Part shown: positions 30,901 through 54,900 of the stretch, piece by piece
Numbering within the stretch: the stretch's first letter is position 1
Layout: every line of letters begins with the position of its first letter
Origin: Ylistrum balloti
Taxonomy: Eukaryota
Length of the DNA: 64,000 nucleotides
Assembly (NCBI RefSeq): GCF_031769215.1
Contig: NW_026782588.1
Location: 62,001 to 126,000 of the forward strand
Reading direction: 5' to 3'
Made by a program: the position numbers and the translations under genes
The notes under the pieces: generated by a model
Database searches by the model: none
What the model was told of the DNA's origin: nothing
The model's input: only the letters and a program-made list of their open reading frames with translations

Positions 30901-33900
30901 ACACTGTCCAACAGAGTTTTATGATATTATGAGCAACCAAGAAAGTTAGGTAACCATTATTACTAATATCACAGAAGAAAACGGCTCATGTGTTCAGATG
31001 AAAAGAAATCCAGCAAAATGAAGTAATACCCGAGTCATTAAAGCAGACAACACCAACATCGTAGGAGTGGGAACATGTAGACCCAAATCCATCATACGGA
31101 CATTGCAACAGTTGGGTCTCCGAGCCAGAACAGCCGACGTCACTCATCCATGTAATTCCACTTCCCTTGCCAAACACAGCATATCGATAACCTGACCCAT
31201 ACCTATGGAAAAAGGGAATTTCTTGAACAAACGCCGGACGAGATCAGTAAGGAATTTGGCTATCAGAACTCAATATATCGTATGGAAAACGAATATTGAC
31301 GAAAGAATAAGACTATTGTTATGATTTATTAACAATGAAATACTTACACTATTTAAACGTTGTTTTTGTGTTTTGAGATGATAGTATAACATTTCGCAGT
31401 TTCAAACATATTACCACCGTAATATTCCTATATACATACTATCAACCGAAAATGTTCGGGGGAAATATTGTCGCCGCCATGTCCGTTTGTCTTTCAATTC
31501 GTCCTTTCGTGTCCGGGGCATAACATTGCCCACATTTAAGAAAGGGTAATGAAACTTCGTGTATACATTGGTCATACTAATGCAATGTGCAGTCCTCGAC
31601 CGAAAGAGTTACTGCCCTTTGTTAAAATTTTGTGTCTAGAGCACAATATTAAATTGTTTGCAGTTAAACAAGGATAATGAAACTTGCTGTATACATTGAT
31701 TACCCAAAGACAAGGTACATCATACTGTTGTTAGTGTCCACAACCCTTTAATTACATAATCATTTGCCTTCGTTAAAACCTTGTCTGGTGTTTTACTTTG
31801 CCGGCATTTAAATAAACTAAGATAATAAAACGTGATATATACATCAGTCATACAAAAAACAGTGTTGTGATGTCAAAGTCCATGACCCCTCTGTTACAGT
31901 GTTATTTTCCTTTGCATTTAAACTAGGATCACGAAACTTAGTGTACACATTCGACATAGTAAAAATGTGCAGTATGCCAACTTCAGGGCCTGCTTAATTA
32001 CATAATTTTTGCCAATTCTTTTAAATTCGTATCCAATAAAGTCGTTTTAATGGGAGTATTCTTAATGTTCACAGTGTTCTTGGCTGCTTACGTGACCTAC
32101 ATTTGTCAAGTGACTGAGAGCTCCGGTGATTATGTGTACCGAATTGTTGTCATAAAGTCTGGAGAGCAAGGATAATTCTGTTGATACAAATCAGTCTAAT
32201 ATTATCCATTTTGCATTGCTTCAGAAGGTCATGAAGATTTATTTCACTATCATTTTTATGAAGTACAATGTTCACCTGAACCCAAGCATCCGACAGACAA
32301 CCTGTGCATCATTATTGTCCCAGGACCGGTCACATACAGCTCCCCACTCTCCTGCAAAGAACACCTCCACACGACCAGAGCTGTTGGAAAATCCTCCCAC
32401 CAACCGAACGGCATGTTCTTCGATGTCTGTAAAGACGAATCAATATTAATATTATTAGGAAAGTTTCGTTTTTAATCTGGAGTACAGTGCAATGGTATTC
32501 ATTTGCTCTTCGTAATCTTACAGAATTTTTCTCTGGTGTTTAACCACATGCATCAAAATGTTAATAATTGTTGCACTACACGCTCTTTGTTTGAGGGAGA
32601 GATCTTCCAATGTTTCAGAGATACCCTCAAAATACAAGGGATATGGAAGTCATTATGATATTTGAAGTGTACGGAATTCTTTCGTACATTTGGTAATATT
32701 TTTTGGTAATTTCCTATCTCTTCCTTTCCCTATCTTTGTCCCCGTTTTATTACGGTTTCTTTTAAAATTGTTATCTTCCTGTTTGACTTTAAGTAGAATG
32801 ACAATAAATAAATAAATAAATTGTTTTTTTCTAAATGTGAAAAAAGAACTAGAGCTGCTCGGTTGTTGATCATATTTCTGTACAACGTGATTCTGCCAAT
32901 ACATGTATGCGCAACAAAACAACGAATGAATATATTGACAATCCGATTTGACAGATGATTCCGAATTTTATTTAATTAAGAGATTAGGTCATGGATGTTT
33001 GTTTTAAAATGAAAATTGTTGAAACAACAAAATTCGGGATTAATTCCAAATCTTAAAATGAAAAATGGTTAAAATATCGAAATATGATATCATCAACCAA
33101 AAAACTAAACATTTAGTTCGAAACAATGATTAATTTAATCACAGCAAATCATATCGCCGTTTTTTAATCATGACGCAGTGGTTCCTCTTACTTTCCAGTC
33201 AAGTTAACGATTAAATTTGAATCGGACATGTAAAAACGCTTTATAAAGTTTACATCTGTGGAATATCAGTCAAAATCATCGTTTATATGGATTCCTAACG
33301 TAAAGTGGCAAAGATTATTTTATTGTAATGCAGATCAATAAAATACCAAACATCTTGAAAAATCTTCAGATTTACTCTGGGTAAAAAATCAAACAAGCAG
33401 TAAAGGATGTATTGATTTTACTACAGAAATATTGTTATAATTAGCCGTAATATTTCTGTTGTCGCCACTTTATCAAAATAACAAATTAAATCACGAAAAT
33501 GAGTCTATTTTGCTACTTCAATTCTGATGCTATATCATTGAACTTTTCGTATAAGGACAAATGTGACAAGTTTAAACATACATTTATCACTATCAGATCT
33601 AACTCTTTCACTGATACATGTTCATACCCATCCTTCACATAGACAATCACCGATTGTCGTCTCATTGTCGTCATATTGATAACGTTACCACGAAGGTGGA
33701 GATGATGACAAGAAAATGCCGTAATAATTAGATATAGTATATGATGATAAATTTTACGATTCCTTCAGCAAAATTACTAATGTTGTCAATTAAAAGTAAA
33801 ATATGACAACTTAGCATTAGCGAAGAGTCATTATTGTCCACATATTTACCACTATCGCTCAAGCAGGACACAAAAGCAGATCGGAATGCACTACTGATAT

Positions 33901-51900: not shown

Positions 51901-54900
51901 ATCATAGAATACCTCTACGCGGCCAGAAGTGTTAGAAAATCCTTCCATCAGCCTCAGATCGAACTCGGCCACATCTGTCAACCAGAAACGAATGATTTCT
52001 AAAAGAATGAATGACAGCAATGCTTGTCCAAAACTTTATTCAGGTTGCGTATTCGAAACATTCATTACCCTACATTATTCCTGAACAGCTGCTGGAAATA
52101 CGATTAATCAATGAATTATTATATTTCTAATAAAACATACTGTTAACACTAAAGGTTGCCCACTAAATACATGTTTTCTTATTTCCATTTGAAATTGTAA
52201 AATAGATGAGTGTATATATGTATAGATATAACAAACATTTGGTCACGCCATACGTGATCAGCTTTCATACTCATTTACAGTCACATTAAAACAATCCACA
52301 ACATAGTACCTAATGACATCAGTATAAATGACCACGAAATTATCAACTGTTATATCCTTGTCGGTACTGGAGTAACTCTTCAGAGACAATATTTGATTTC
52401 AATATATAACGATATGTAATAGGCTGGAAACTCTAAACTGTTATTCAATAGCATTCAACTCCGTCCAAGTCTTTTTGTTTAATTAAGAAAGAGGACATGT
52501 TTGAAGTGCTGCACATTTCAAACTTGATAGTTTCATACCGTGTATTTTTTACTGTGAACCCGAGCAGGTAGGGCTCAAGATTTGTAATTGCTATCCCGAT
52601 AACATAGATTGTATGTAGCGACTTAACTGATGTTCTTTGACCCTTTTCTTCCAAATTATATAACAACGTTTTCTTCCCGCGTCGCTACTTATCAATATCT
52701 TACTTTTGATTCATGATGAATGTCCACCCGAATAAATGGTTAAGGGTTTATACAGTTGTAAGGTTATGATCTGGTCTTAATGCTCATAAAAATAGGACAG
52801 TGTATGATCCTACATTTCAGCTGTCATATTTCATAAACTGTTATTCAAGATAACACTAGAGAAATGATGATTGAACAGCTGCAAATTTCAAAGTATAATA
52901 ATATTATAGTAATAAAACGTAACGATAAAACTGAACAAATGCAGAAACTTTTGTTTCATATGGTGTACTTTTTATTGTGAGACCGAGCAAATAGGACGTA
53001 AGATTTGAAATGACTATCCCAACAACGTAGATTGTATGTAGCGAAAACAAACACAAAGAAAATACCAACAGGACAACAGTCCTTTCGTCGATAAGTACAA
53101 AGTCAGATAAGTAACATTAATACTAAACCAGTATGAATAGCTTTCCACCAAGTTGTATGATAATCGTGATAATTTCAATTTCCCTATTGTGAATATTCCA
53201 TATCTGGATAGCAACAATCCTGCATCCAAGCCTATGGTGTGTTTGTATGTCGAAGTGTATTCGATATTAAAGGGTCTGTTCGCATTATCCCATTTTCGTG
53301 CTCGAAGACAAAGGGCGGACAAACTCGTTACACAGCGCTACAATAGATCCAAGTTGATAAAAATGGGGACGTTTTATAGTGCTATCATTGAGAAATATTC
53401 TATTTCCTTGTGCGATATGAAGCTGTACGTGTTTGATGCTCATTAGTTTGCCTGTTGCTTCCGTTGTTGTATACCTTGATCCCATTTGAGAACGTGACAT
53501 TACTAACGCATACTCTTCCGGTCTTAGCGTTCTTGTACATTTTTATGGGTCTATGTGTAAATCTTTCTTTTGTTCATATTTTGCCTTAATTTTATTTGAT
53601 TTTCAATTATGCTCACATAGTGTCATTTTCTTATATCTTTTTAATTCTAAATGTTCGTCAATCGTTGATATGGAATACAATAAACTATAAATCAGGTTAT
53701 GCCCTATGTTTATACCTTTTTGTGTTGTGCAAGCCACAAAGACAGTTGATTGATAGTTAGAACTATAGTACGAAGAAAATTCTCCCCATCCCCCAAATGG
53801 GCAGTCAGCTATACTGCTCTCTGATCCGTTACATTGCACATAATCCATCCAAGTCGGTTGCTTTCGGTTGTTAGTTTCGTGGTATAATGTAAATGTCGAT
53901 GCAGAGTGGCCAAAGCTAAAACAGAATCGATGAATTAATATCATTAACAGTTTTAACTGTACTATCATCTACTTTATTTTTCCACATTAACCAATTAAAC
54001 CTTTTATTGACCTTGAGTATTTTATCACATGGAGACTCTTGTAAGACATATCGAAACTTAATGATTCCCATACAATGACAAAATGGTTTTATGTTATCTA
54101 GGTGAAAATTTTATTTAAGGGAAATATTTCATTTGTAGCTAAAAAAAAATTTAGTTTATGAAGGAGCGAAACAACCCAAAGTGTTTATAAACATGACATG
54201 CTCACGTGCATAGTAAACGTGATTGATGACAGGCTATATAAAAACTAGAAAGTAATCCAAGATAAATTTCTCATAAATATGTATCGACCACGACAGTAGT
54301 TACACCATAGTACGCACAGATTTCACACTACGAACTAAATCGCTGTGGTTTAAACGCCAGTACAAAAACTGCTCCTAATAATCTAAATTACACTTATTTT
54401 AATCATTAAAACATCTACGGCTTATACCAATCAAAACCAAATAAAAAACTAAATTATGACTGTATCTACTGTAAAACCTATTTAGAAAACCACAGCCGTA
54501 CATGCAAGGTCCTTTCTTGTGACTTCTAACTTTCTGATATGTTGTTGTTAGATATCTGACCTGTATCCAAGCGTCCTACACACAACTTGTGCATCCTTGT
54601 TGTCCCAGTTTCGAGGGCCAATGTAGCCCCAGTGTCCGTCATAATACACTTCAACACGCCCTGAACTGTTGTAATATCCTTCCCTCTCTACTAGGCGTAC
54701 GGCTACCTCTGTGTGATCTGCACGGGACAAAAAATGGTCATGTGTTCTCTGTCAAAAGTCATACATTACATAGGTGCAATATGGATATAGTAATAAAAGA
54801 CGTTTTGATGATCATCATTGTGTCTATGTTTAATTTAAAAATTAGCCATAAGTATCTATACCACAGGAAATAAAATCCATGACCCTTGACCTTCATAAGA

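Follow-up and report, generated by a model that had tools for sequence, protein, structure and literature searches.

A likely young, still-exchanging tandem array of a four-exon, two-SRCR cassette within a large multi-SRCR gene of Ylistrum balloti

Can a gene carry several nearly identical multi-exon units side by side, gain or lose them by exchange and still encode an intact protein? The question is raised by a stretch of 64,000 nucleotides from Ylistrum balloti (RefSeq assembly GCF_031769215.1, contig NW_026782588.1, positions 62,001 to 126,000 of the forward strand), which is called the window here and whose positions are counted from its first letter. Its minus strand contains a long chain of SRCR domains, part of which lies in repeated units of 3.87 kb. 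An earlier reading made from the letters alone (the sequence-only reading) had suggested that the number of these units, and with it the valency of the protein, probably differs among individuals. From the analysis below, we consider it likely that the locus is a young, still-exchanging tandem array of a four-exon cassette with two SRCR domains, located within a large multi-SRCR gene.

Geometry and coding content of the array

Self-BLAST of the window, which is without any N, revealed a single large head-to-tail tandem array on the minus strand at 33817-52868. Its length corresponds to 4.92 copies (four full units and one unit of 3550 bp), with offsets of 3872, 3869, 3870 and 3891 bp between consecutive units, 98.8% identity at an offset of one unit across 15.2 kb and no higher-order periodicity within the array. 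The units, delimited by self-BLAST and MAFFT, are as follows.

33817-37688, minus strand: unit U1
37689-41557, minus strand: unit U2
41558-45427, minus strand: unit U3
45428-49318, minus strand: unit U4
49319-52868, minus strand: unit U5, 3550 bp, without the first 319 unit columns

The units were aligned with MAFFT in gene orientation (minus strand) and compared pairwise. U2, U3 and U4 are mutually separated by 6-13 substitutions per 3.87 kb (99.66-99.84% identity, with 6 substitutions over 3869 bp between U2 and U4), U5 shares 99.2-99.4% identity with these three, and U1 shares 97.4-98.1% with the remaining units. Private markers set apart U3 (5 substitutions), U4 (a 21-bp insertion) and U5 (18 substitutions). 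The five near-identical 3.87-kb units of the sequence-only reading are thus borne out as 4.92 copies with 97.4-99.84% identity. Tandem Repeats Finder (TRF) missed the array because its longest period was 500 bp. In the 648-Mb assembly, the unit intron occurs five times, all inside this array, and the long intron at 40406-41557 is unique to this locus; a second haplotig with another unit number was rejected, since the unit introns were found in this array alone.

Each unit contains four exons. Splice sites were read in U2 and the matching motifs were then located in every unit; protein searches were run exon by exon, and splicing was read from open frames and consensus splice sites.

51824-51974, minus strand: exon A1 of U5, N-half of the canonical SRCR, 151 nt (Pfam SRCR E=1.9e-13, splice motifs)
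47955-48105, 44064-44214, 40194-40344 and 36325-36475, minus strand: equivalents of A1; the protein is the same in the five units
51391-51563, minus strand: exon A2 of U5, C-half of the canonical SRCR, 173 nt (Pfam SRCR E=1.8e-9)
47521-47693, 43630-43802, 39761-39933 and 35892-36064, minus strand: equivalents of A2
49678-49834, minus strand: exon B1 of U5, N-half of a 4-Cys variant SRCR, 157 nt (Pfam SRCR E=1.5e-11)
45787-45943, 41917-42073, 38048-38204 and 34177-34333, minus strand: equivalents of B1
49351-49538, minus strand: exon B2 of U5, C-half of the variant SRCR, 188 nt (Pfam SRCR E=3.2e-7)
45460-45647, 41590-41777, 37721-37908 and 33850-34037, minus strand: equivalents of B2

Per unit, the splice motifs and exon lengths give 151+173+157+188 = 669 nt, or 223 codons, in frame, which is what had been claimed. 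The intron phases run 1/2/1/2/1, so the cassette is phase-1 symmetric, and the flanking domains show the same phases. Each unit adds 669 nt and both begins and ends in phase 1, so the frame is kept whatever the number of units; an alternative in-phase acceptor 24 nt upstream of A1 would give a unit of 693 nt, which is still in frame. All array exons (20 of 20) are open and of equal length among units, as are open all 32 SRCR half-exons of the 16 domains in the chain. These predicted exons show that a length change by whole units is frame-safe. Head-to-tail units with whole exons, a frame-neutral length and introns as alike as exons are the features of a coding macrosatellite.

The whole chain comprises 16 pairs of N-half and C-half exons on the minus strand, and the map from Pfam and tblastn places 10 of them within the array, in agreement with the sequence-only reading. 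The half-exons match Pfam PF00530 at 31-55 bits, above the curated cut-off of 26.1 by which they belong to the SRCR superfamily; N-halves cover profile positions 2-43 and C-halves 47-99. In chain order the domains are the following.

57357-57575 (N) and 55052-55324 (C), minus strand: D1
54560-54721 (N) and 53606-54025 (C), minus strand: D2
33817-52868, minus strand: D3-D12, the array
32275-32439 and 30989-31243, minus strand: D13
30502-30675 and 29021-29239, minus strand: D14
28612-28890 and 28067-28312, minus strand: D15
19275-20213, minus strand: D16, B-type, 8 kb beyond D15, past a Harbinger-type transposase and a 26-bp minisatellite

D16 is a candidate member of the same transcript.

Generally, two domain types alternate. 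The A type, the first domain of the unit, has six Cys, and Asn-Thr-Ser replaces the Cys before the GRVEV strand; the B type, the second domain, has four Cys, and the Cys-Asp-Asp of A is replaced by aromatic residues. All eight pairs of the chain keep this A-B order, and in each of the 16 domains a phase-2 intron separates the two halves after the LGY motif. Group A SRCR domains are defined by six Cys and two exons per domain (PMC3100851; PMC10855680). The A domains have the six Cys and no C1-C4 pair, and two exons per domain were found in 16 of 16 domains; the B-type domains, which have only four Cys, count as a derived variant outside canonical group A. The closest relatives of the A domain in PDB are CD163, PIT54, CD5L, CD6, M2BP, SCARA5, MSR1, DMBT1 and MARCO.

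How old are these duplications? Domains of like type share 29-74% protein identity outside the array vs 93-100% inside; D1 and D2 (53606-57575) are 48-74% identical to array domains in amino acids. The flanking domain pairs match the unit in exons alone (68-75% nucleotide identity), apart from a local 102-bp repeat as the sole non-exon match, so the earlier statement that they share no recognisable introns with the units holds. Therefore the A-B duplications of the chain are old, and the array is a much later round. A B2-type relic exon lies ~150 bp 3' of the array end:

33610-33667, minus strand: B2-type relic exon, 77.6% nucleotide identity, with an in-frame stop

The amplified unit also includes dispersed repeats, both in the A2-to-B1 intron.

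39184-39486, no strand assigned: Tc1/mariner-type fossil in the A2-to-B1 intron of U2, corresponding to ~300 bp at the start of a 1.5-kb element
38836-38985, no strand assigned: 150-bp piece of a ~310-bp short dispersed repeat, in the same intron of all units

The fossil exists in all five units (the others at ~35315, 43053, 46944 and 50814). In the assembly search with one unit it was ~70% identical to many genomic copies, and the 1.5-kb family has copies 89-96% alike. It is read as Tc1/mariner-type because open frames of the family match the Tc3-type helix-turn-helix profile HTH_Tnp_Tc3_2 and DDE_3, below the Pfam curated cut-offs; a weak tblastn protein trace of the family was found in each of the five units. 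The short dispersed repeat piece is 77-81% identical to more than 35 loci. The sequence-only reading had described an embedded Penelope-like fossil; it was right that a fossil was co-amplified in all units and wrong about its class. Six GIY-YIG loci of the same genome were taken as possible Penelope-like elements; tblastn with their open frames of 100 aa or longer (up to 658 aa) matched nothing in the array, and no match anywhere in the window had an E below 0.45, so the Penelope-like candidate was rejected in favour of the two repeats above. No hammerhead or other Rfam family was found in 33000-42000. Elsewhere in the genome (G000:C422:240415-261997), GIY-YIG matches appear every ~5.3 kb, four of the five within 755-aa open frames, and this locus looks like tandem Penelope-like elements.

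Exchange between units and the role of the amplified domains

Did the units arise in one clean burst, or are they still exchanging sequence? The answer lies in how their differences are distributed. Compared with the majority of the inner units, U1 has 3 substitutions in the first 2000 columns, then an isolated diverged patch of 5 differences in columns 2127-2165 (window 35524-35562), then 566 columns without any difference, and then a sharp switch at column 2732 (window 34978), beyond which U1 differs at 49 of 847 intron columns (5.8%) and at ~5% of the B exons.

33817-34978, minus strand: diverged 3' part of U1, from the intron tail through B1 and the next intron to B2, 5.8% in introns and ~5% in exons

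U5 is slightly diverged near its outer edge (~1.3% in columns 319-1000). Besides, U1 and U4, which are non-neighbours, share three variants within 12 bp that are absent from U2, U3 and U5, and eight sites common to two units give five mutually incompatible groupings. The 3' part of U1 appears to be older, unhomogenised sequence, and the patchwork of U1 looks like conversion tracts over an older copy; inner units that are alike between outer edges that are different form the pattern expected of unequal exchange. The mosaic U1, the gradient from edge to interior, the tract shared by U1 and U4 and the incompatible groupings favour ongoing homogenisation over one clean burst, and homogenisation is probably continuing. 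The sequence-only reading had left recent expansion or ongoing homogenisation as its two options, and it is sustained by the inner units being most alike, by the U1 patchwork and by the U1-U4 tract.

A hybrid origin, by unequal crossover between two old copies of different type, was rejected; it predicts a diverged 5' part of U5, and ~0.8% was observed there vs 5.8% in the 3' part of U1. Tandem duplication by an integer number of copies was also rejected, as the array has 4.92 copies and columns 0-318 have no flank counterpart.

The following course of events would account for the locus. Older duplications of A-B pairs would first have grown the 16-domain gene, and the latest rounds would have made the five 3.87-kb copies together with their introns and transposon fossils. 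Misaligned units would then undergo unequal crossing-over and gene conversion, which add or remove units and homogenise the inner ones, while the outer edges escape. With phase-1 cassette ends and independently folding SRCR domains, the protein would stay intact at any unit number and change by 223 residues per unit.

The two domains of the cassette have diverged unequally. The A domain protein is the same in all five units, whose A exons show 0 nonsynonymous and 1-2 synonymous changes. Between the B domain of U1 and those of the other units there are 12-13 nonsynonymous and 5 synonymous differences, a ratio of nonsynonymous to synonymous change (pN/pS) of ~0.63; seven of these nucleotide differences lie within 15 nt of exon B2 and separate NYLDR (U2-U5) from YDIDY (U1). 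U3, U4 and U5 have one private amino-acid change each, in the B domain. These counts are too small for a statistical test of selection.

What would additional units do for the protein? In SRCR8 of DMBT1, ligand binding needs cation sites formed by D1019, D1020, D1058, D1059, N1081 and E1086, and D1019A or D1020A, which lie in cation sites 2 and 3, abolishes binding; SRCR domains without the cation-site residues, such as those of factor I and hepsin, have no known ligand (PMC7043408). We mapped the DMBT1 numbering onto the chain by motif spacing and CD163 alignments, not by structure. At the mapped positions, the array A domain has Ser-Ser (after GTVC), Lys-Ser (the Asp pair of LDDV), Thr, and Ser (the Glu of HSED), and the array B domain has Tyr-Tyr at the first Asp pair and Asn-Asn at the second (Gln-Asn in U1). 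In D1 and D15, by comparison, Asp-Asp is retained and the Glu position is still acidic. On this motif-spacing mapping, the acidic residues of DMBT1-type sites 2 and 3 are missing from the A and B domains of the array. Because the amplified domains are without the Asp/Asp/Glu residues that D1 and D15 keep, the valency that the sequence-only reading attached to them is doubtful on residue grounds, and they may bind in another way or act as a stalk.

The strongest rival of the valency view is that the amplified domains are spacers or non-canonical binders, so that unit number tunes length or reach; we give this somewhat less than an even chance. It draws on the residues just described, which replace those essential in DMBT1 SRCR8 in the amplified domains and are kept in D1 and D15 of the same gene, and on the lack of known ligands for such domains. 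It has to contend with the GRVEV....W stretch, kept in A and B types with one substitution. The bacteria-binding peptide of DMBT1, which makes its binding multivalent, lies in the corresponding GRVEV...W stretch (PMC3100851). The identical A protein with synonymous changes only, which fits constraint, and the variable B patch, which suggests a surface under diversification, also speak against a mere spacer, and the mapping is one of motif spacing and CD163 alignments rather than structure. That it is precisely the amplified domains which have lost the cation sites offers a way to ask if SRCR chains gain copies for the sake of binding or of reach.

A bolder reading, which we regard as speculative and would sooner doubt than accept, is a hypermutable immune-type receptor module, in which exchange alters the number of A-B pairs and conversion shuffles the B patch (NYLDR or YDIDY, Asn or Gln at the cation-site Asp position), with the same happening at several SRCR loci. 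If it were true, individuals would carry different lengths and mosaics of one receptor.

Unit number in other individuals

Is the array the same in other individuals? Five sequencing runs, with two organism labels and from two studies, contain the stretch as Logan contigs, and four of them (X1-X4) were compared over 48997-54996, which covers U5 and the upstream flank. In all four runs, one contig leads from 52865 back to 48997 and thereby links the end of a unit to the start of one (56-64 and 373-392 letters on the two sides), and another contig crosses 52868/52869 from the unit into the flank (from 52802/52810 to 53418-53421). Because both contig paths were found in every run, the tandem structure and its 5' boundary are not assembly artefacts.

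The sequence of the units does differ. All four runs depart from the assembled haplotype, with majority letters absent from every assembled unit (for instance at 51129 and 51132 for X1 and X2); where a site is private to U5, the contigs mostly have the letter of U2-U4, as expected of collapsed majority paths. In exon B2, X2 has U1-type letters at all diagnostic sites listed (49390-49514), and X1, X3 and X4 are mosaic, their U1-type letters being confined to 49390, 49469 and 49471, plus 49460 in X1. At 52473, two paths exist in X3 and X4. Since the majority letters differ among runs, unit content, coding sequence included, is polymorphic and mosaic.

For the number of units, contig depths give a weak hint of differences. 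The depths of junction path and flank path are 51.7/8.0, 61.3/19.8, 45.8/17.8 and 49.7/19.8 in X1-X4, values of contig depth that are no copy number, and their sums are roughly equal to the depth of the shared upstream contig. Taken at face value, which contig depth as no copy number does not allow, the split would mean ~7.4 units per haplotype in X1 (3.7 if only one flank haplotype is represented) and 4.1, 3.6 and 3.5 in X2-X4, vs 5 assembled. Copy-number variation among individuals is rather probable.

One part of the flank is almost missing from the runs. In 53597-54996 (D2 exons and introns) there are almost no contigs at 95% identity or above in the four runs, a hole that proves nothing; the array and its boundary are covered up to 53578 in the same runs. 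Because of this gap, the word share of the runs is 0.75-0.78. The hole could come from a divergent haplotype, a presence/absence variant or a filter effect. Just 5' of the array, 52997-53596 contains very high-copy repeats, with a summed contig depth of 570-38,000 vs ~50-75 in the array.

Against variation, the unit number might be fixed in the species after a recent expansion, which we hold to be unlikely. In favour of fixation, the same junction and 5' boundary recur in all four runs. Units of 3.87 kb at 99.7-99.8% identity are nevertheless ideal for misaligned exchange, tracts of such exchange are visible in the assembly and the majority unit sequence differs among runs; the flank share of contig depth, which is no copy number, suggests ~3.5-4.1 units in X2-X4 vs 5.

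Less likely again, and improbable in our judgement, is that the count of five is an assembly error by collapse or over-expansion. Units separated by as few differences as U2-U4 are hard to phase; the private markers of U3, U4 and U5, the lack of higher-order periodicity and the multi-copy junction in independent contigs of four out of four runs argue against it. Neutral repeat turnover in a decaying or unexpressed gene, to which the lack of an RNA run, the pN/pS of 0.63 between the B domain of U1 and the others and the B2 pseudo-exon just 3' of the array might point, is very improbable given 32 open half-exons with consensus splice sites in a consistent phase chain and A domains with 0 nonsynonymous vs 1-2 synonymous changes.

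Several points weigh against the young, still-exchanging array as we read it. Unit columns 0-318 have no counterpart in either flank of the array, and because of this and the non-integer 4.92 units, the first duplication is not reconstructable. The U1 mosaic could instead come from allelic recombination with a divergent haplotype. The unit count of five is that of the assembled sequence, and none of the five runs containing the stretch is RNA, so that expression and splicing rely on open frames and consensus splice sites. The crossover mechanism, the differences in unit number among individuals and the production of the protein are what we infer beyond the array itself.

If unit number does differ among individuals, the locus would be an invertebrate counterpart of coding copy-number variation of the DMBT1/LPA type. 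It would offer an animal that has no adaptive immunity a simple means, safe for the reading frame, of altering both the size and the surface of a pattern-recognition protein, whether secreted or membrane-bound, and it would serve as a marker in disease-resistance studies of a fished bivalve.

Comparable systems and further features of the genome

Human DMBT1 (SALSA/gp340) had been named by the sequence-only reading as the precedent. Its alleles carry 7-20 SRCR domains, and its CNV1 mutates at 0.7-2.7% per generation (PMC4851238), so copy-number variation of SRCR repeats is real, and its CNV1/CNV2 resemble our array in that near-identical tandem units within one gene add whole SRCR domains in frame. 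The domain group and exon structure are different. DMBT1 domains are group B, with 8 Cys and one exon, whereas the array domains have two exons and 6 or 4 Cys and alternate as A-B pairs, which places them outside the DMBT1 family of single-exon group B domains. DMBT1 has SRCR-interspersed domain (SID) exons between its domains and a CUB and ZP end; in our chain one Thr/Pro linker was seen, and ten downstream open frames on the minus strand, each of 70 aa or more, gave no Pfam match, CUB and ZP included, a scope that leaves out short exons and sequence beyond the window. Unit number is known to vary in DMBT1 and is likely to vary in our array. As far as domain and exon structure tell, the DMBT1 analogy is one of architecture only.

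The linker, ~35 aa and rich in Thr/Pro, opens the N exon of D15 (window 28750-28840, minus strand). No other mucin-like linker was seen in the chain, and this one is reminiscent of the DMBT1 SID spacers.

Kringle IV type 2 (KIV-2) of human LPA is another parallel. It has a multi-kb, multi-exon unit, arranged head-to-tail with very high identity and in frame, with one disulfide-bonded module per unit, and the size polymorphism of the protein arises from unequal exchange. LPA differs in its kringle fold, in one domain per unit, in being a vertebrate plasma protein and in far higher copy numbers.

The group A proteins MARCO, SR-AI, Mac-2BP and LOXL2 share with our gene the six Cys, the lack of a Cys before GRVEV and the two exons per domain. 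They combine one to four SRCR domains with collagenous, BTB or catalytic parts, whereas our chain is SRCR-only, with 16 domains of which every other one has lost a further two Cys. The SRCR genes of sea urchin and sponge are likewise many-domain and SRCR-only and have grown by tandem duplication at the domain level (PMC10855680). That survey deals with diverged paralogues whose domains have a single exon (urchin) or three exons (sponge), and describes no intragenic units of 99.8% identity and no polymorphism. The array is of a known kind by its structure, that of coding macrosatellites such as DMBT1 and LPA KIV-2; what is uncommon is the two-domain, four-exon, group A-type unit and the predicted loss of binding residues in the amplified copies.

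Is this array alone in its genome? An SRCR profile search gave at least 163 SRCR exon matches from 481 candidates, and two further loci contain arrays with SRCR-like content. At G000:C566:425610-439206 there are 8.3 copies of a 1637-bp unit (99.4-99.8% identical) with two SRCR-like open frames each, and the adjoining G000:C566:414733-425438 contains 9.4 copies of a 1136-bp unit (99.5-99.7% identical) with one SRCR-like open frame each; in both, the SRCR motif pattern was read by eye in the open frames, not by Pfam. G000:C789:32311-38161 contains 3.8 copies of a 1525-bp unit with SRCR N-half exons (96-98% identical), where the SRCR content rests on equally spaced half-domain matches to PF00530. 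With near-identical arrays at C566 and C789 too, young SRCR-exon arrays are, by these profile and motif matches, recurrent in this genome, at two or more loci besides this one. The two C566 arrays are followed by long acidic repeat frames, and a satellite with a 33-bp period lies at 29733-31312 of C789, next to its SRCR array.

Around the gene, the window contains several other features. No signal-peptide exon was located upstream of D1 in the window. A 31-bp minisatellite of 13.8 copies (57537-57965) abuts the N exon of D1, and further upstream, 59483-63204 includes satellite arrays with units of 56/84 bp and a duplicated stretch of 1.1 kb (60605-61671 and 62100-63204; 94% identity). In the gap between D15 and D16, at 22415-24812 on the minus strand, there are open frames of 334, 236 and 132 aa, the first of which matches DDE_Tnp_4, a PIF/Harbinger-type transposase. 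The 26-bp minisatellite, with 34 copies ~89% identical at 20304-21195, lies directly 5' of the N exon of D16, and its period is not a multiple of three. On the plus strand, an intronless open frame of 351 aa (8618-9670) matches 2OG-Fe(II) oxygenase (E=1.3e-17) and DIOX_N (E=1.4e-6).

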